Positions 6,181-62,173 of a stretch of DNA of 64,000 bases are shown here, one piece after another. The position numbers were made by a program, and so were the translations under genes. The notes beneath the pieces are model-generated. The model made no database searches. It saw nothing but the letters and a program-made list of their open reading frames with translations, and was not told where the DNA came from. Numbering within the stretch: the stretch's first letter is position 1; the number at the start of each line of letters is the position of its first letter. The stretch spans positions 124,001-188,000 of the forward strand of contig NIVC01003103.1 of assembly GCA_002269645.1 (NCBI GenBank). Reading direction: 5' to 3'. The stretch comes from Macrostomum lignano (Eukaryota).

Positions 6181-42158
<35,978 letters not shown>

Positions 42159-51393: not shown

Positions 51394-52912
51394 CTTCTCC
51401 CCTTTAGTTTCCAATTTAAGCGAAATCGTTTGAGTCTCATTCAGAAGGATAAAGAAAGAAGGCAGCCCGCCCGCTGAGAAGATGTCTATGGCCAAAGTAT
51501 TGGCACCACTGACTCGGTGGCGTTATGCACTGCGGAATGGGGGGGGGCAGAGGGGCACCTGTCCCTGAAATTTGAGATTATTGCTTGAATTCAATCCGGG
51601 AGCCACTCAGGGGAGGTCAGGGGGCAGGGGGGGGGGTCAGATGCTTAGAAAAAAGCTCTTGCTCCCCTTCCTAGGCAAAAAACTTGCTCCTCGGTCTCTG
51701 CTTCCCCTGGGGATCAGGTATAGCAAAGTAGACATAGAGTTCCTTTGCTGGCTGGATTTCTAATTAAAGTACACGCTGCACTGTGGCACTGGCCGACCCA
51801 CGTTCAGGATGAAATCTGTCGCCCTTATCTGCACTTGCCGCAGCCTGATGGAGCCAATCGAAGCAGTCAATAAACTAAAAAATGGAAATATGGCTCAATC
51901 TCATACCAGCTTGTCAGTTTATCTCCAATCAGCTGTCTCTGTGTAACACTTTTTGAGATGAGACGCATGGACTGCGGCAGTTTTGCCGCTATTGAAAAAG
52001 CGAAACATAGCCTAGGTATTCTACTGCCAGTAGAAACCTAAGCAAATTGCCGATAAATTTACAGGGACTGCTTGGAAAAATTTTGCGGGATTTTTTGTAT
52101 AATTTTGAAAAACTGTGAGTAACATTGAAGGTCATTTTCACGGCAGATTAATGAATTCACCAGCTTATCGACCGGTGCCCTTCTAGTAGTCCTTGCATAT
52201 TAATTGTGATACTACGCACTTGGACTGGAAACACTCGGGCCTAGGCGCTATCGTTCAAACAGAAATAAAGAAGCCAAGCCATGTTTGATTGGTTTTAAAT
52301 AAACATAGATAAATGTATATATATTTATCTATGCCTCGGGCGCGAACTCGTGCCTTTATTATGCAGTCAGGCGGGCAGATGATGCGATGGGGCAATCGGG
52401 GGGACTGCGGGTTGATTAAATCTGCAGCTGTGAGGTCAAGGCGCAGTCAATGCCCCTTCCTAGCTACTTGTAACGCTGGCGCCGGCGTGAGTAGTATGCA
52501 GAGGAAAATTTAACAGAAAATTGACAATCAACTTTTTGCTGAAGCACAGAAAATGAAAACGGCGGAATATTGTAGAAATTTTCGGATAAACGCGGCAATA
52601 TTCGTGCGAACTGATGCAGCTGGGGAGGCGATGAGGTGATGCAGCAACAGGTGCAAAAAACTGAGAGAGGAACTGAAAAATGAATTCGGTAAAAACAAGG
52701 GGCCGGCGGATTTCGACCCCAGCCAGGGTGTACATTCTGAATTCATGTACTTAATAGATATATATATATTAATATGTATAAATATGAATATGCACTGATA
52801 GCAGCAGACAGGTGTGTTCAGTTAGACGCAACAGACTAAGCAGTGAGACGCGATAAAACTCTGTCTGCTGGGATAGGGGAGCCGCTGGGTCCGGGCTCCT
52901 CCGGCTGCCGGC

Positions 52913-52975
52913 TCATTTCAGCATCTTGTTCGCCCGCTCGTTGGCGCCCTCGATGCGCGTCTGGTTGGACGCGGC
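52913..52975 (-). CDS. SNAP25: SNAP-25 exon 7
   Basis: acccgcag|GCC; [20 protein letters not shown]. Confidence 0.92.
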   Translation of the reverse strand, partial: AASNQTRIEGANERANKMLK

Positions 52976-55900
52976 CTGCGGGTGGGCGGGGAGCGCAGCG
53001 TCGCTTGTGCTATGGAGTACATGCGCACTGATGGCAAAGAGCAAACCCCCAGGAAACTAAAACTAGCTGTGAAGTTCGGCTATTAAAAAGTTTTTTTCTT
53101 CAACTGCTTGCTTTGAACTCTGTACGACTGCAGCGCACGAGCCCCGGCTGCTGGTAGGATCAAGCAAACCCACCTTCTCCTGGATGCGGTCCAGCTGCCT
53201 GTTCTGCGAAGTGATCTCGCTGCCCATGTCGATGGCCATGTTGCGCAGGTTGCCAACCATGTTGCCGACCTCCTGGATGTTGTTGTCCATCTCGTCCTCG
53301 CGGTCGTCCTTCGTGATTCTGAAATTGAATAGGACATTGTTTAAGTACTCCTTCCCCAGTGTACATTCTATCCAATCTCGGCCCTCTCCCCAGTGTACAT
53401 TCTATCCAATCTCGGCCCTCTCCCCAGTGTACATTCAATCCAATCTCGGCGTTCTCCCCCAGTGTACACTCTATCCAATCTCGGCCCTCTCCCCCAGTGT
53501 ACATTCTATCCAATATCGGCCCTCTCCCACAGTGTAAATTGTATCCAATCTTGGCTCTCTCCCCAGTGTACATTCTATCCAATCTCGGCCCTCTCCCCAG
53601 TGTACATTCAATCCAATCTCGGCGTTCTCCCCCAGTGTACACTCTATCCAATCTCGGCCCTCTCCCCCAGTGTACATTCTATCCAATCTCGGCCCTCTCT
53701 CCCAGTGTACACTCTATCCAATCTCGGCCCTCTCCCCCAGTGTACATTCAATCCAATCTCGGCGTTCTCCCCCAGTGTACACTCTATCCAATCTCGGCCC
53801 TCTCCCCCAGTGTACATTCTATCCAATATCGGCCCTCTCCCACAGTGTAAATTGTATCCAATCTTGGCTCTCTCCCCAGTGTACATTCTATCCAATCTCG
53901 GCCCTCTCCCCCAGTGTACATTCTATCCAATCTCGGCCCTCTCCCTAGTGTACATTGTATCCAATCTCGGCCCTCTCCCCAGTGTACACTCTATTCAATC
54001 TCGGCCCTCTCCCCCAGTGTACATTCTATCCAATATCGGCCCTGTCCCCCAGTGTACACTCTATTCAATCTCGGCCCTCTCCAACCAGTGTACACTCTAT
54101 CCAATCTCAGTAGTACTCTCCCTGAGAGGACACTGCCGCTCTCACCTGGTGACGTAGCCACCCTGAGGTCCCATTCCGTTGTCGCCGAGCACCACCCGAG
54201 GCCCGTCGGTGTTCACAGTGCCGTCGTCGTCCTTCTTGAAGTTTTTGTCGAACTGGCCTTTGCCGGCTCTGGCAGGAAAAAAGTTCGACAGGAAATTAAC
54301 TATTGGTGCGCGAGTAATTTCAAACGAACTAGATTGACCCTCACTTGTTCCACGGCAGGATGCAGAGGCCGCAGCACTTGTTCAGATCGTCCAGATTCTT
54401 CTCGGCATCTTTCATATCCGTGTTGATCTGGTCCATGCCCTCCTCGATGCGGTCCATTTGCTCTGAGATGGCGAATGAGCACCGGGGTTGTGCCAGGCTG
54501 GGTCGGTGTACACTGGGTCACACTCGGGGGGCATCAATACGCATATTTTTGCTCACCCTAATGGACTACGGGGTCAATTATTCAATACAGAAAGTATGTG
54601 CATGCAAAGAATACAAAAATAACCCGAAGGCTGGTGACATTCTTGCAGACTACAGCATCTGATAAGGACATCCGCCTAGCAGAAGCCTGAGTGTAAACTT
54701 TAAATAATAAATCTCCCAGCTGACCATTTCTATCAGCTGACCAATTATCCCAACTGACCATTTATCCCAACTGACAAATTACGAGCTATCATAACTGACC
54801 AATTATCCCAACTGACCATTTATCCCAACTGACAAATTACGAGCTATCATAACTGACCATTTCTCCCAGCTGACCAATCATCCAATCATGTTGAACAGGT
54901 AAAAATCAATAAAAAACTAAAAGTGCAGAAAAGCAGACATCATGACTGCTACAACAGGAAAGATAGCCATTAGCATAATCAAAGCACAACACGGAAGCGA
55001 GCCTCACCGCCTTGGTCGTCAAGCATCACGAGAGTGGAAATTCCGGCCTCCTTAGCCTGATGAGGCGAAGGCGGGCGGTGGGGAGTAAACAGATTAAGTA
55101 AACTGAACAGCTTGAGGGATATGAAGAGCATTTTATCCACTGGATCACTGGACTACAAACGTTGGGAGAAACTTATACAAGTACCAATAGTGAAACTCAA
55201 CCTGCAAATACCAAATTTACTTGAAATTCTGATGCGTGAAAATTGGAGAGTCAGGGAGTGGGAGAGTCAGGGAGTGGGAGAGTCAGGGAGTGGGAGAGTC
55301 AGGGAGTGGGAGAGTCAGGGAGTGAGAGAGTCAGGGAGTGAGAGAGTCAGGGAGTGGGAGAGTCAGGGAGTGGGAGAGTCAGGGAGTGGGAGAGTCAGGG
55401 ATTGGGAGAGTCAGGGAGTGGGAGAGTCAGGCGATAAGAGAACTTTAGCACCCTCCACCTTGAAAGTAAGCTATGAAGGTGTCACCAACAATATTGATGG
55501 ATTGACAAGTTTGATAGCAGACAAGACAAAAAAAGACAGCACAGATTCCACCGGTAGAGTGGGACGGCGAGACACGGTGCGCTGTAAGCAGTGGGTTGGC
55601 ACAACTGTGCACACCTGTGCCCTTATCTACCTGTTTCTCCCAGTCACCCTCCCTTTCTCTCGCAGCGGCCAATAAGGTGAAGGCACATCAGCCAGGCGCC
55701 TCACTCACCGCTTCGCACATGGACACCATTCGTCGGGTTGACTCCAGCGACTGAAATTGGGGGGTGAGAGATTGAGTGCACTTCAGAGCAGTGTTTTTTT
55801 TTAATTAACGGCCTGTTGAACTGGAGCTGTGTACAGCTGGTACTTGCCGCTGAGGCTGTAGGGGTTGCAGCACTTTGTATCACTGCCGCAGCTCAGAGCT

Positions 55901-58900
55901 GCCAACCAATCACAGGAGGGATAGCTGGAGCTCAGAGCTGCCAACCAATCACAGGAGGGATAGCTGGAGCTCAGAGCTGCCAACCAATCACAGCAGGGTA
56001 GCTGGAGCTCAGAGCTGCCAACCAATCACAGCAGGGTAGCTGGAGCTCAGAGCTGCCAAACAATCACAGCAGGGTAGCTGGAGCTCAGAGCTGCCAACCA
56101 ATCACAGCAGGGTAGCTGGAGCTCAGCCTAATTTGCCACTCGCTCATGGTGGCTGCCTTTGATGGTGTGGTGCAATCAGCCCATTCAGCTGAGTACTAAG
56201 CAGCCCAGACCAGCACAGCTTAACTCTACAGAGCTTTTGGTGAATGCACTGAGCCATCAGCAGCCACTCTCAACTATCAAGCAGCCACTCTCAACTATCA
56301 AGCAGCCACTCTCAACTATCAAGCAGCCACTCTCAACTATCAAGCAGCCACTCTCAACTATCAAGCAGCCACTCTCAACTATCAAGCAGCCACTCTCAAC
56401 TATCAAGCAGCCACTCTCAACTATCAAGCAGCCACTCTCAACTATCAAGCAGCCACTCCCCCTGGTTTACTTCAGTCTGGGCCCGGTCCACCAGCAGCAT
56501 GATCTCGTCCGCCTCAGTCAGAGGAGGCGCGGTGGCGTCGGCTGGCTCTTCGGCTCCAGCCATGTCAGGGGCAGTCGGTCAGGAAGGTCTTTGGCAGCCG
56601 CTGGCACGGGCTGGGGGCGGGGCCGCTCTGCTCCCTAATAATATACAGCCCGGATACATTAAAATGCCTAGCGGGGTGGCGCAGAGCTGATTGATGAGTT
56701 CCTCTGACTCCTTCTCCCTCCCTTCCCGCACCTCCCCGGCAGCAGCGTACGCTGTGGGATCGCTGCAATGTTTTTTCTGGCAGCGGGAGGCATTTGTTTG
56801 TGGCCCTCCCCGCCCCCCCCCCTGCTGGTCCGCCAGCGCTCTCTGCTCTGTGCTCACGGTCAACAAATGCTGGCCGGCCTCAACAATGAACTGGCCTGCT
56901 GGCCTGCCGCTGCCAAGGCTGGTGGGATCTGAATGCGGGAGCTCAGGTGGCCGCGCGCACTCACAGCTGGAATTGCGTCGCGCGCGCTTCCGCCTACTGC
57001 TAGTAGCGATATCGGGGCGAGGCTGCCCGAACGGAGCAGTTTTTCGACGCCGTGGAGATAAACAAGAAAGCGGGGGGGGGGGGGGCCGCGATGGCGCAGC
57101 CTCTCAACGCGGCGAGTCAAATTCCCCTTTCTCCCCTCTCCCTTCGCCCCCTGCCCGGTGAACTCCGAGGCACTGAGGGCATCTATTATATTATATTGGG
57201 CTCGCATCCCCGTCCCACAGCCAGGTCTCATCAGGAATGCAAGACGGGGGGAGGAGGGGAAGGCGGAGTCCCCCAGAGCCTCTTGTAGCTTGGTTGATGG
57301 GGTTCAGGCAGCCTCGCCTCTCCTTTCTTGTCCAGCTTCATCCCTGCGCTGTCTCTTCTCCGGGCTGCCGACTTCCCCAGCCTCCGCGCCTCCTCCTTGA
57401 GCCGTGGGGTGTCCGCACCGTTTAGCTAATGGCCAGGGCACCCCCTTCCCCTCTCCCAGCTCTCATTCCCTCTTCTTTCTCTCTCGTTTTTCCCCCGTCA
57501 CGAGATCCTTCTTCATCCTTCTCCAGCCGCGCGGAGCCTCAACAAGCCGCAGAAGGTGACGGAAGGAAGAGTGCAAAACGGCCTGCCCCTTCGGGCTCCC
57601 GCGGGACTGCGGCAGAATGAGGAAGCGAGGTAGGGATTTAGTAAGCTGGCGGGACCGGTGAGGCTGTCTGCATGGCTAGGGGGAAATGAAAAGGTGCTCA
57701 GAGCCCTTTTTCCCGGCCAGCTGTCAGTCACTCTGCCCCGCCTTCTCGCCGGGTCGGCAAGTCTGGGAAATGCCGGAGGAGACTCGACCTCCCGGGACTC
57801 GAACTCGCACCCGGAGAGAGCCGACACAAAAATAGATGCCTCATCATGACAAGCTCTTCCTCTGCGGGCGTTCGAAGACCAGTTGGAACCGGTTCCAACT
57901 CAGCCACCCCAGCCTCCGCTTCTCCATCTTCTACAGAAATTGGCTGCCTGCCAAGCTAGGAAGGCCAAGGGGCGGGGGAAGAGGGGCTCTGAGCCCGATC
58001 TCGGACCTTCAAATGCACTTTAATCCCCACTTTCCTCGGCCGCTGTGGAAGAGAGCGAGGGATCGGAGAGTGCGGAGCTGCGGGCCCGGCAGCTCACAGG
58101 ACGAACCGCCGCTCACCCGCTGCTCGCCTCTCCCGCCGTCTTGCGTCCCCATTTCTCCCCTCACTCTCCGCTCCCCCAATTTCTCTGTCCGTCCGGGCTG
58201 GGCAGGCGGGGTGGCCCGCGGCGGCGCAAAAAATGAGAAGGGGACGGCTATGCGTGCTCAGCTCCCCCGAGAGGCTGGGCTCCCCGCCTGCCTCATCTCT
58301 CTTCTCTCCTCTCCTTTCCCTTCACCCGGCTCAGTCCTAAAAACATGCCGAGCAGTGAATAGCGGGGAGGCTGGGGATGGGGAGCGGGCAGGCCGGGCTG
58401 AGCACTGCCGCCCCTTCAGCAAAATCAATGCTTAATACTCCGCCCCAGCCTCCCCGGTATGTATATTCTTTATTGGTCCACAGCTCCCCGGCAGCTGCAG
58501 CTTTCTTCTAGCTTCATCATCTCCCTTCCCCGTGTTCGCCAGTTGCAGCGGCCCGCAAGAGAAAGGCAGCGAAGGAATGAGCTTGTCTGCAGCCTCCCGA
58601 CTGACCGGCAGGGTTCGAACAGCTAAGGGGGGGGGGGTATCGGAGCGCACCCAGAATCTGGCATCCCCAGCCACAGAATTCTCCCGCTGCGAGTCCTATC
58701 GATCCGGGGGATCAATCTCCGGCTGAGGTTTTGCATCGCCTCGGGAACCGGATTAAAGTATTTGTCTACGGGGTAGACAGGCAGAGTAACTATAACTACA
58801 ATCAGATAGGCCAATGCGTCGGCATCTAACTAGCACTATTTTTTTATAAGTTGAGTCTCAAACTGCAGGTAATTTGTAAATCATAAAAATTAACAGATGA

Positions 58901-58998
58901 AGCTGGCTCACCTCATCGGTCTTCTGGTTCATGAGCAGCTGGATCTCCTCCAGCTCGGTGCGGGGCACCTCCTGCGCTGGCTGTTCCGGGGCGCTCAT
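52913..58998 (-). CDS. SNAP25: SNAP-25 (Qbc SNARE), whole gene, 7 exons, 208 aa
   Basis: Exons 58998-58912, 55750-55709, 55056-55008, 54462-54345, 54268-54146, 53318-53174, 52975-52913. Motifs [80 protein letters not shown]. Phases are consistent. Confidence 0.95.
53174..53318 (-). CDS. SNAP25: SNAP-25 exon 6 (Qc helix)
   Basis: aatttcag|A; [48 protein letters not shown]|GTGGGT; 145 nt. Confidence 0.95.
53355..54105. repeat. ~34-bp minisatellite in SNAP-25 intron 5
   Basis: CCCCAGTGTACATTCTATCCAATCTCGGCCCTCT units. Confidence 0.93.
54146..54268 (-). CDS. SNAP25: SNAP-25 exon 5 (linker)
   Basis: ttcctgccag|A; [42 protein letters not shown]|GTGAGA. Confidence 0.9.
54345..54462 (-). CDS. SNAP25: SNAP-25 exon 4 (118 nt, palmitoylation cysteine cluster)
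   Basis: catctcag|AG; [41 protein letters not shown]|GTGAGG. Confidence 0.95.
54715..54875. repeat. Short composite repeat
   Basis: CTGACCATTTATCCCAA / CTGACAAATTACGAGCTATCATAA units. Confidence 0.75.
55008..55056 (-). CDS. SNAP25: SNAP-25 exon 3 (49 nt)
   Basis: ctcatcag|GCT; [17 protein letters not shown]|GTGAGG. Confidence 0.92.
55245..55432. repeat. 16-bp minisatellite
   Basis: GGGAGAGTCAGGGAGT units. Confidence 0.9.
55709..55750 (-). CDS. SNAP25: SNAP-25 exon 2 (42 nt)
   Basis: aatttcag|TCG; [14 protein letters not shown]|GTGAGT. Confidence 0.93.
55895..56125. repeat. ~38-bp minisatellite containing CCAAT
   Basis: CTCAGAGCTGCCAACCAATCACAGCAGGGTAGCTGGAG units. Confidence 0.9.
56257..56458. 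repeat. 21-bp minisatellite abutting the SNAP-25 exon 1b donor
   Basis: CAGCCACTCTCAACTATCAAG units. Confidence 0.92.
56471..56563 (-). CDS. SNAP25: SNAP-25 alternative first coding exon (1b), paralogous to exon 1a
   Basis: [31 protein letters not shown]|GTAAAC, 93 nt, phase 0. Aligns with exon 1a [29 protein letters not shown]. Confidence 0.8.
58912..58998 (-). CDS. SNAP25: SNAP-25 first coding exon (1a)
   Basis: ccttccag|acagcATG; [29 protein letters not shown]|GTGAGC, phase 0. Confidence 0.92.
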
Positions 58999-61281
58999 GC
59001 TGTCTGGAAGGTGCAGAATTGGGGGTTGGCCTCGAGTGCTCAGAGAAATTGCTGAATGCTGCCGGTGCTGCATAAAACTGTAGGATAAGAAAGAGCATTC
59101 GGGAACACTGCGTGCTACTGCCTTATTATATACGAGCCCATGAGTATCGGCTGGCTAATAAAATCATACAGCAGTATTGGCAGACGGCCCCGGGGAGACC
59201 CGGCCTCAGCTTAGAGACTGGGGCGAATCCGCGTCCCCCCCCGGACCCTACCAGCCTCCTCCCCAGTACTGGCCGCCCGCTCCCCAGACGAGCGCCGAGC
59301 TCATGAAATCCAGGGATTAAGTATTGGTTTGCTCAGCTCCTGACGGGGCTGAATTAGATTAACGGGCGGGATTTTGCTGACTGAGGTTGGGGTGGATCAG
59401 ATCGGCACAGGGAAGTCCGCAGTGGCTGCAGCTTCAAGCAGGTTCAGATCATTCATCTCTCACTGTGTTTGACTGAGATTTTAACTGGATAAACATGACC
59501 GTTTTGCGGCTGACTTTTAAAAATTAATGTTGAGCCTCAAGGAGATTTCATGCGAAAACCGGAGTCGTAACCAATGGCAACAAAAATTAGGCAAAAATGC
59601 CTAAGTATTCGTAATTAGGCATCAGAGATTGAAAGGGTGGAAAAATTGAGATCTCATTTCTTGTCCAAGACAAACTATAGCTTCAATTTCATTCAAACGT
59701 TAATAATGTGCACAAGAAATATAAAGTAAATATATGCTTTCATTGAAGAGAAATTCAATCATTCAGGCAAAAAATCAATGTTAAACTACAAAGCAGCATT
59801 CGACAGAAAAATCTACCTAAATTTTGAAAAATTGTGCTCCTGCAAGCTAAATCACAAACGGACCATGTCAGTAATAAATCAGATGCATACAATAATTATG
59901 CAATAACTGGTTTATTTTAATATTCTATTCGAATTTCAATTTCAAGAATCCAAGATCTGTTATAAAAAATAGAACACAATACAGATAATTAAAAATCTTT
60001 AATATGGCTTTAAATTGAATTTAATGATTTACAGCCATGTAAACAGCAATGCATATTAAAAAGTGTCTATTTTATTGTCAATTTCTCTATTTTTAATGTT
60101 CCCCCAATTTACATAATAATACAAGATGTTATTGTTGATGAGCAGACTAAGCTAAGTATATAACTGGCAAAATAATTGACTCTAGACCAAACAAACAATA
60201 GAGAACTTTTGTAAGCATATATTTTAGTTATAACTTGAGCAAAGGTTAACTAAAAATAATCGATTTTTTTTGCCTCTGCATTTCTTTCTTTGAACCTGTG
60301 ATTAAAGCAATACAAAGCTACATTGTATAGCACATATCTGCATGTTTTATCTTATTTAGCTAGTGTGATCATCTTATCTTATGATATTTGTGTAGTAGTT
60401 AATTTTATTCATTCTTGTCATTTAATATTTAAGCTGTATATTTAGAGGCTAAAAAGACCCTTAAAAATTAATTTAATGCTATGCAAAAGGCCAAATCATG
60501 AGCTTTCATAATTTTATGTTTGTGTTTACCTTTTAATTAGTTTTGTTGCCTGTCAGATATAAATCGATAAAAGATAGTTCACGAGCTTTTTGCGTCAAAC
60601 GGGAGCTATCAAGAATCTGAGTAGAAGTTCAGTTATTATTTATACAGTACGAAGTAAAAAGAATGAGTTGCGTTGCGCGCTTTCCAGTCGAAAAATGAAT
60701 TTGATTTTATGAATTTAGTATTCCCGATAAATATTTGCTCCTTTTCTTAAGGCTTATTCAAAGAAATAAAGACATAGAATACAATAAAACTCAAAGTTTT
60801 TGCTTTCTATTTTTTAACTTTTAGAAACTTTTCGGTTTCAAAAGATTTTGTTATACCTCATCAAACGATTAGCGAGTATTTTCGGTATTAATAATAAAAA
60901 CATTCTTGGTTCAAATGAATCGAGTAATACATATCACTCAGCTACACTTTGCTGTTTAAGTGAAGCGAAAAAAATGAATTGGATACTCGTGTAACTTGGT
61001 CTTTATTAAAATTTCAAAACTTTTCATAGTGAACGTCGTCAGCACAGCACGCGATAAGAGAAACAGTGAAAATAATTAAACAATAGTTTGCTTGCCTAAC
61101 AGAATTATTTTTATGTACGTTAAGTTTAAATAAAAGCTTTGTTCCACACAAAACTGGTTTATGCCACTTGTACATTTACAACGTAAGGGCAACTGAGTTA
61201 ACAAGGCGAGCGGAGATCATTAATAAAGGGAGCTAAAAAGCAACCAATGCACTACCGTATATTCTCAAGAATTCACATCTT

Positions 61282-62173
61282 CTAATAGTCCGGGGTGCGC
61301 CACACTAGGACCGCAAACCGGCCAACAAAGCAGTGCAGCATGCGACCGACCTCGTGCGTACAGAACGAGCCGTACTGGAAGCGGCCAACGATGGCGTGCC
61401 AGGCCCGCCCGTCCAGATCATCCAGCCCGGCCTTGATGTGCTTGGCGATGTCCTTCTCCAGGCTGTAGACGGCCTGGCCTTCTCGAGCCAGTCGGACAAT
61501 AGTGCGCATCAGGTCCTCCGGCAGCTGATCGTCCACGGCCAAGATTTGAACATTGTCCAGACTGTCGTCAATTTCGCCATCGTTGCCGCTGGATTGAACC
61601 GCGTATTGGTCGGCTTCATCGACTCCTGTGCCTGGAGGCCCGGCGTTCACTCGGCGGGTCTCCACTTTCTCTCTGTGTGCAGCAGGGTTCGTTGCTTGCT
61701 GCTACTTTATGGACGACACTCCTCCGCCCACCTCACTCCATTCAATCTCTTCCCCAAGCGACGCTTTCATTGCATGACACAAGTGCCAACGCATGTACAT
61801 GTAAGTACCTCTTCATATCCCTATTCCTATACTATGAATGCAATATCTATTTCAACTGAGTTGCATACAACGGCAGCCTCACATGTAGTCAGTGTTGGGC
61901 GTGAGTCCTAAGGTCTCGCAGTACTCCTCAACCGTGATTGTGCCGCTGTTGTCGGCGTCGAACAGGTCCAGCCATTTCTAGCAAAAGGCGACAAAGGTTC
62001 AGTTGAACGGGTTGCACTTTTCGAGCTTTGGCAACCAAGATGAACAGTAAACTCACCTGAATGAACCGATCGTCAAACTCCTGCTTTTTGCAATACTCCT
62101 CCAGCTCCTGTTTGGTGATCTCACCGCTGAAGTCGGTGTCGATTGCCTCGAACGCTTTGAGAAAATCAGCCAT
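61282..62173 (-). CDS. TAL: Tegumental-allergen-like (TAL) protein: two EF-hands plus C-terminal dynein light chain-like domain, 3 exons, 200 aa
   Basis: Exons 62173-62057 (EF1 DTDFSGEITKQE), 61977-61883 (EF2 DADNSGTITVEE) and 61672-61282 (EKDIAKHIKAGLDDLDGRAWHAIVGRFQYGSFCTHE...LVWRTP, DLC fold). Phases 0 and 2 are consistent. The EF-hand + DLC architecture defines the flatworm TAL family. Confidence 0.9.

Follow-up and report, generated by a model that had tools for sequence, protein, structure and literature searches.

How many N-termini can a flatworm SNAP-25 gene encode, and does the means of encoding more than one belong to flatworms alone? The question is raised by a 64,000-nt stretch of the Macrostomum lignano genome (assembly GCA_002269645.1, contig NIVC01003103.1, forward-strand positions 124,001–188,000; hereafter the window, with coordinates counted from its first letter), whose minus strand carries a complete SNAP-25 gene, Mlig003741. 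An original prediction, made from the sequence of the window, had described two ATG-bearing first coding exons in this gene and had read them as an independent route to two SNAP-25 isoforms. Our analysis upholds the exons and not the independence. We consider it quite probable that Mlig003741 has two mutually exclusive first coding exons, a distal 1a and a proximal 1b, with 1b providing an alternative start and being the orthologue of an old alternative first exon. Judged by its sequence, 1b is best regarded not as a flatworm invention but as the local copy of a first exon of the kind found in Caenorhabditis elegans ric-4 and also present in the annotations of snails, ticks and blood flukes.

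A tblastn search with human SNAP-25, together with exon assembly, gave seven coding exons per isoform, with GT and AG at the ends of every intron. The coding part of exon 1a (58998–58912, minus strand, 87 nt) has its own ATG and a gtgagc donor, and that of the unannotated exon 1b (56563–56471, minus strand, 93 nt), lying about 2.3 kb further downstream within intron 1, has its own ATG and a gtaaac donor. Each reaches its GT donor in phase 0, and both share the acceptor (...aatttcag) of exon 2 (55750–55709, minus strand), which starts with SLESTRRM; the order is thus that of the ric-4a/b exons, with the a-type exon distal, the b-type exon proximal and exon 2 following. Joined to exons 2–7, exon 1a opens a frame of 208 amino acids and exon 1b one of 210. 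On the two peptides, their ATGs and the phase 0 of both donors, the original prediction was accurate in every detail. The 208-residue product is identical to the annotated protein PAA53331.1 (BOX15_Mlig003741g1; P0001), which has PF00835. The spliced product, with its CCGLC motif, belongs to the SNAP-25 family of Qbc t-SNAREs (PF00835), and phmmer aligned it to SNAP-25 chains in the PDB with E=1.8e-61 over residues 15–209.

The peptides of the two exons had been said to align and to differ in the first heptads of the Qb helix, and both statements stand. Their local BLOSUM62 score is 48, compared with 20.6 +/- 4.3 for shuffled versions of the 1b peptide, of which only 4 in 20000 reached 48, so the similarity is beyond chance. 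The segment that differs between them aligns to SNAP-25 residues ~8–24, in the N-terminal helix of solved SNARE complexes (residues 16–90 of the query correspond to 9–83 of chain 1sfc_C), a region which we take to lie N-terminal to layer −7 in the SNARE layer numbering. Upstream, the 1b frame is closed by a stop (it is TAG/TGA-bounded) only five codons before the ATG, and because no AG occurs among these codons, an in-frame reading of 1b as an internal coding exon after 1a is impossible; it can act only as a first coding exon. Since each exon has its own ATG and donor, and 1b is not readable in frame after 1a, either exon would be spliced alone to exon 2.

In the mechanism that we propose, a transcript beginning at, or joined just upstream of, either exon would splice that exon in phase 0 to exon 2, the distal 1a giving the canonical, highly conserved a-type N-terminus and the proximal 1b a b-type N-terminus. 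The two SNAP-25 products would then be identical from SLESTRRM onwards and differ only in about 2.5 N-terminal Qb heptads and a short preceding tail. Under this model, M. lignano would splice 1b to exon 2 and, by analogy with Schistosoma and C. elegans, 1b would have its own promoter; the choice of isoform would be cell-type specific, and the changed N-terminal heptads might alter the start of SNARE zippering or the binding of partners.

Conservation of exon 1b could be followed within M. lignano, where SNAP-25 paralogues fall into three groups. Paralogue A comprises the window gene (locus L002, 100% identical over the 7.5 kb compared) and a second copy (L001) that is 97.8% identical to it; paralogue B comprises Mlig011835/006889 and paralogue C Mlig006816/016640. 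By tblastn, all three groups have a 1b-like exon between 1a and exon 2, in each case with an ATG upstream and a GT donor at the exactly homologous codon boundary: gtaaac in A, gtgcgt after PLTEAEELMMEIDRAQNE (MSNRRNQPADVGGVHLDENGEPRPLTEAEELMMEIDRAQNE) in B, and gtaaga after PLTEAEELLLDVDGCQRV (SGEPRPLTEAEELLLDVDGCQRV) in C. The first introns of A, B and C (3.2, 6.3 and 1.0 kb respectively) are unalignable between paralogues except at 1b, which is the top and sole significant first-intron match in blastn (A–B, E=6e-8; B–C, E=3e-6). In the codon alignment of 1b, synonymous changes occupy most degenerate sites under conserved residues; the PLTEA codons, for example, are CCT CTG ACT GAG GCG in A, CCG CTC ACC GAG GCC in B and CCC CTA ACC GAA GCC in C. 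The ratio of nonsynonymous to synonymous differences per site (pN/pS) between paralogues is about 0.4 for 1b (0.18/0.45 for A–B, and 0.30/0.71 and 0.27/0.72 for the other two pairs), whereas for 1a it is about 0.05–0.1 over the same 18 codons. The two copies of A differ by one synonymous change in the 93 nt of 1b. The conservation of 1b amid first introns that are otherwise unalignable, combined with its low pN/pS, argues for selection on the 1b peptide and provides strong evidence, at the level of sequence comparison, that this selection would date from before the three paralogues split; it speaks for selection, not for splicing in the animal. As a separate matter, differences in repeat array length explain most of the gap in gene span between the A copies L001 and L002 (7496 versus 6086 nt).

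Among animals more widely, homologue N-termini are of two kinds, a tight a-type (...ELQE(I/L)Q...N..TDE) and a more variable b-type (...(L/M)TE...L...(I/V)(D/E)....E), and in many species both come from a single gene. Exons of the two types were located by tblastn in Schistosoma haematobium (L009; a exon at 10001, b exon at 12579 and exon 2 at 13092 of the locus), Biomphalaria glabrata (10001, 26481 and 46355) and C. elegans (10001, 17622 and 17877), and they were also found in Schistosoma rodhaini (3001, 6109 and 6624). The order of distal a, proximal b and exon 2 is the same in these four species and in all three M. lignano paralogues. The original prediction had suggested that other flatworms be searched, and the pair in the two schistosomes answers that suggestion; since the same distal-a/proximal-b pair recurs in Schistosoma, Biomphalaria and C. 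elegans (ric-4a/b), the independent flatworm route has to be given up. N-termini of b-type are annotated in ticks, annelids, rotifers and many molluscs as well. A profile search of 1.84 billion representatives, with cluster look-ups, recovered those of the ticks Dermacentor andersoni (Snap25 X8) and Ixodes scapularis (X5), and the same representative search added an acoel with a b-like exon, Convolutriloba. Within the flanks examined, neither Convolutriloba (L014) nor Dermacentor (L020) showed an a-type exon ahead of its b-like one.

To place the M. lignano exons in these classes, we used profile hidden Markov models (HMMs) built from non-Macrostomum exons only, 24 of a-type and 24 of b-type. 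In leave-one-out trials all 24 a-type exons were correctly assigned, and 20 of the 24 b-type exons scored higher on the b-HMM, one being misclassified and three having no a-HMM score. The M. lignano 1a exons reached 30–33 bits on the a-HMM and 6–8 on the b-HMM (32.0 and 7.8 for that of the window), whilst on the b-HMM the 1b exons of A, B and C reached 5.7, 12.2 and 11.3 bits, their a-HMM scores being about 0 (0.3 for that of the window). The b-minus-a difference is therefore +5.4, +11.0 and +12.0 for 1b of A, B and C, compared with −22.6 to −27.1 for 1a. On this basis we tentatively class the window 1b as b-type, the signal being weak for this copy. Two other approaches were tried. Mean BLOSUM scores placed 21 of 24 exons in leave-one-out trials judged by eye, and a two-cluster hierarchical clustering of the N-terminal tails failed through one outlier. 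In its upstream part, 1b of paralogues B and C carries a shared motif (LDENGEPRPLTE / NASGEPRPLTE; xNGEPRPLTE), and similar motifs occur in neodermatan flatworms (LDDGTIRPMTE), in the Logan sequence P0130 (LDANGNPILTE) and, more loosely, in nematodes (INGLVLPADMSDE).

Given that order and phase are kept in flatworms, molluscs and nematodes, we lean slightly towards the view that the a/b first-exon pair is one ancient SNAP-25 module, going back at least to the protostome ancestor and perhaps further. The pair is not known from insects or from vertebrate SNAP-25 and SNAP-23. We found no paper on a/b conservation across phyla, on M. lignano SNAP-25, on exon duplication in invertebrate SNAP-25 or on its alternative first exons beyond the C. 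elegans work; most subscription journals lay outside this search, and we claim no priority.

Several observations made along the way concern the distribution of such exons. Bdelloid rotifer matches to SNAP-25 (P0048, P0106, P0113, P0118, P0129 and P0131) all have a b-type N-terminus only (…PPRILTEEEQILLSIDQGVHE), and no a-type rotifer SNAP-25 sequence came up in any of our homologue searches. In the lizard Phrynosoma platyrhinos (CM034707.1; L013, 18042–18122), a SNAP-25-family first coding exon, MAANGVAGPAFGNLEERIHQVNME, is more b-like than a-like; it belongs to a gene that is distinct by sequence from SNAP-25 and SNAP-23 and has a poor gene model. No a-type exon was found in the 8 kb upstream, and we did not take this gene as evidence for the pair in vertebrates. 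A second alternative-looking pair occurs at exon 3 of paralogue C (8029–8076 and 9623–9670 in L005; 7800–7847 and 9627–9674 in L006), its second member being ARESGLQAIVMLDDQG, and similarly in Biomphalaria (SKEAGIKTLVMLDEQG plus SRDVGVRTIVMLDEQG; L010, 47144–47191 and 74558–74605) and in the tick Dermacentor (SKEAGIRTLVALDEQG plus ASDAGVKTIVELDKQG; L020, 96637–96684 and 98232–98279). It looks like another old mutually exclusive SNAP-25 exon pair. Exon 3 is single in the window gene and in paralogue B.

The transcript evidence on 1b-type exons comes from several sources. In M. lignano, a full-length homologue search with isoform 1b returned only 1a-type proteins from this species, and a profile search with the three 1b N-termini yielded mostly short fragments, P0143 being the sole M. 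lignano match. P0143 (BOX15_Mlig011916g1) is a 58-residue ‘hypothetical protein’ (L008, 10001–10177; NIVC01001428.1) whose open reading frame (ORF) starts at the paralogue B 1b ATG and runs through the 1b donor into the intron; the contig, which ends 772 nt further on, also holds exon 1a of paralogue B, without annotation, 4.4 kb upstream. If the annotation behind P0143 is transcript-based, as we take it to be, the entry hints that this region is transcribed. In Schistosoma, four independent Logan RNA-seq contigs contain a complete 219-residue b-isoform ORF in which the b exon is spliced to exon 2 and the a exon is missing, and their 5' untranslated region (5'UTR), up to 233 nt long, follows without a break the genomic sequence immediately before the b exon. 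A collinear 5'UTR of this kind, with no a exon, indicates that in a flatworm transcripts do start at the b exon, which is thus a true first exon. In C. elegans, where the Logan contig L012 also shows the joining to exon 2, the distal ric-4a and proximal ric-4b exons are a published alternative first exon event with mutually exclusive junctions, NSM neurons using ~90% a and PVM neurons ~80% b (PMC12084653); that paper cites Hwang & Lee (2003, J Mol Biol 333:237). The original prediction had also suggested a possible division between neuronal and glandular isoforms, resembling that between SNAP-25 and SNAP-23. We found no support for it. In C. elegans, neurons express both isoforms, to a different extent from one class of neuron to another.

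The sequences upstream of the two exons suggest where their transcripts might start. On the minus strand, a TATATAA at 59126–59132, 134 nt upstream of the 1a ATG, and a TATATT within GTATATTATTAGGG at 56640–56645, 82 nt upstream of the 1b ATG, are candidate core promoter elements, and GTATATTATTAGGG resembles GTATATAATAAGG upstream of 1a. Within 52500–60500, the minus strand matches the consensus TATAWAW just three times, at 59126–59132, at 58848 and in a (TA)n run at 52764–52768, and A/T-rich TATA-like stretches precede 1b in paralogues B and C also. The wider surroundings of the two elements are alike too (GTATATAATAAGGCAGTAGC at 59134–59113 upstream of 1a and GTATATTATTAGGGAGCAGAGC at 56647–56624 upstream of 1b, both minus strand), a likeness that could reflect a shared core-promoter motif or chance. 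By analogy with the schistosome and nematode genes, a separate promoter and start site for 1b is plausible. Acceptor-like sites are also present, a strong one directly before the 1a ATG (ttctgcaccttccag/acagcATG, 59004–59005) and another 37 nt before the 1b ATG (ccccagcccgtgccag/cggctgcc...ATG). That before 1a means that this exon is possibly preceded by a non-coding exon or a trans-spliced leader; M. lignano uses spliced-leader trans-splicing. Ahead of the annotated 1a start, the frame stays open as far as another ATG, 25 codons away (59073–58999).

The acceptor-like sites before both ATGs make conceivable a variant with a single promoter, in which a common non-coding leader exon precedes 1a and 1b and these act as mutually exclusive internal exons, or 1b is reached by spliced-leader trans-splicing of the pre-mRNA from the 1a promoter, so that splicing decides the isoform. 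If 1a were spliced to the 1b acceptor, a TGA would fall in frame, as it should in a mutually exclusive pair. We nonetheless think this variant rather unlikely, in view of the Schistosoma b 5'UTR, which follows the genome for up to 233 nt with no upstream exon, of the description and quantification of the C. elegans event as an alternative first exon, and of the TATA-like elements before both exons. The preferred reading, two first coding exons with 1b as an old alternative start, has to be set against a number of observations. The exact 210-residue 1b isoform is absent, on exact look-up, from a collection of 15 billion proteins, and the M. lignano genome annotation has only the 1a isoform for all three paralogues. 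P0143 reads through the 1b donor and so speaks at most for transcription, not splicing. The 1b donor, GAA/GTAAAC, is weaker than the other donors of the gene; the window 1b has the lowest b-type score of the three paralogues and does not have the upstream [DN]G motif found in B, C and other phyla; and mean BLOSUM alone did not separate b from a for M. lignano 1b (differences of −1.2 to +1.7), the b class being heterogeneous. Finally, the pN/pS estimates for 1b come from 18 codons only, and its promoter is deduced from TATA-like motifs only.

Some of these observations, namely the score of 5.7 bits, the lost [DN]G motif, the suboptimal GTAAAC donor and the missing isoform in the annotation, would fit an exon 1b that in paralogue A is a decaying relic, no longer spliced, with the gene making the annotated 1a protein only. 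We regard this as improbable, since ATG, ORF and donor are intact in both A copies, which differ only synonymously there, and 1b has kept its sequence while the rest of intron 1 diverged beyond alignment. Moreover, the A–B divergence of 1b (pN 0.18) lies below those of B–C and A–C, so A is not the fast-evolving copy. Alternatively, as the original prediction implied, 1b might have arisen by an independent exon duplication in the Macrostomum lineage, and it might owe its b-type likeness to convergence on a heptad pattern. The detectable likeness of 1a and 1b (score 48, with its 4 in 20000 shuffles) and the roughly equal mean BLOSUM of 1b to the a-type and b-type sets would agree with such an origin, which we hold to be very improbable: 1b is older than the split of three paralogues with near-saturated synonymous sites, a trematode, a snail and a nematode show the distal-a/proximal-b order too, HMMs trained without Macrostomum put all three 1b exons in the b class, and the xNGEPRPLTE motif of B and C matches the neodermatan DGTIRPMTE and the ANGNPILTE of P0130.

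The remaining exons tie the gene to its vertebrate counterpart. All on the minus strand, they are exon 3 (55056–55008; 16 codons plus 1 nt, in one copy), exon 4 (54462–54345; 118 nt), exon 5 (54268–54146; linker region), exon 6 (53318–53174; start of the Qc SNARE motif) and exon 7 (52975–52913), which carries the stop codon. Alignment with the human protein showed that intron positions after ...ADE, after ...VEE and within ...DEQG/E are common to this gene and vertebrate SNAP25, as is the 118-nt exon. Human SNAP25 exon 5 measures 118 bp, and exon 4 of the window gene aligns to human SNAP-25 residues 55–94, the exon-5 region that exists as an a/b pair in vertebrates. The claim that this exon is single was borne out: 54462–54345 gave the only match in the window, where we found no vertebrate-type tandem duplication of it. 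Whatever produced the M. lignano pair was therefore a route other than the exon-5a/5b duplication of vertebrates, as had been proposed.

Near-perfect tandem repeats fill every intron of the gene (56259–56458, 55890–56126, 55245–55431, 54714–54883 and 53353–54108), with units including 21 nt x 9.5 (100%), 38 nt x 6.2, 16 nt x 11.7 and 35 nt x 21.7; the perfect 21-nt array occupies 56259–56458 as intron filler and starts 13 nt downstream of the 1b donor. A gene overlapping on the opposite strand at 56300–56900 was considered and rejected, the ORFs there being only repeat-derived or GC-driven. The upstream neighbour on the same strand (window ~61282–62173, minus; L002, 6826–7717) encodes a 200-residue EF-hand and dynein-light-chain protein (P0121, BOX15_Mlig026868g3) and ends ~2.3 kb short of where SNAP-25 starts. 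The two genes are fused in an older UniProt model (A0A1I8H4G5; P0123, 433 residues).

For M. lignano, the outcome is a gain in annotation, in that all three SNAP-25 paralogues probably make a second isoform that is missing from the gene models. More generally, the comparison shows the N-terminal choice of C. elegans ric-4 to be no nematode peculiarity, since it is widely conserved in invertebrate SNAP-25 genes. SNARE zippering begins at the membrane-distal start of the Qb helix, the part that exon 1b encodes, and a conserved pair of N-termini at that point, used in different neurons, suggests that t-SNARE assembly or the binding of partners includes a step that can be tuned. None of this adds a new category of mechanism. 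If the ancient-module view is right, invertebrate nervous systems would have worked with two SNAP-25 N-termini for >500 million years, and M. lignano, with three paralogues each keeping both exons, would offer a tractable setting for studying the function of the b-type N-terminus.

Of the known systems, C. elegans ric-4 is alike in having a canonical distal exon (…INLKMNATTDD) and a proximal ‘ID’-type exon (…LNVGIDEKTIE), each with its own ATG and in phase 0 to the SLESTRRM exon, in the same order of a, b and exon 2, and the HMM groups M. lignano 1b with ric-4b-type exons. It differs in that its junctions, the bias between NSM and PVM and rescue by cDNA are documented, whereas the M. lignano pair is known from sequence alone; in addition, the nematode b exon is longer (51 residues) and has a ‘NGLVLPADMSDEL’ motif where the window 1b has only ‘PPLTEADEI’. 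Schistosoma, of the same phylum, shares exon order and phase, with products of 219 and 206 residues in S. haematobium and of 219 in S. rodhaini, and RNA-seq contigs show its b exon in first place, behind a 5'UTR of its own. Both isoforms are annotated there, unlike in M. lignano, and in neodermatans the b exon extends further at its N-terminal side (CGYDEVQLDDGTIRPMTE…), a stretch that is missing in the window copy. In their RefSeq annotation, molluscs and ticks (for example B. glabrata X1/X5, Physella, Pomacea, Haliotis, Liolophura, D. andersoni X8 and I. scapularis X5) likewise have a-type and b-type exons before SLESTRRM in one gene, but with a second alternative pair at exon 3 and very long introns, where the window gene has a single exon 3. 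Vertebrate SNAP-25a/b, lastly, also amounts to two proteins from one gene through a choice between duplicated exons. There, however, the exons are 5a and 5b, whose 118-nt homologue is single in the window; what changes is the C-terminal part of the Qb helix together with the cysteine cluster, not the N-terminus; and the pair is internal and chosen by splicing, not by the choice of a first exon.

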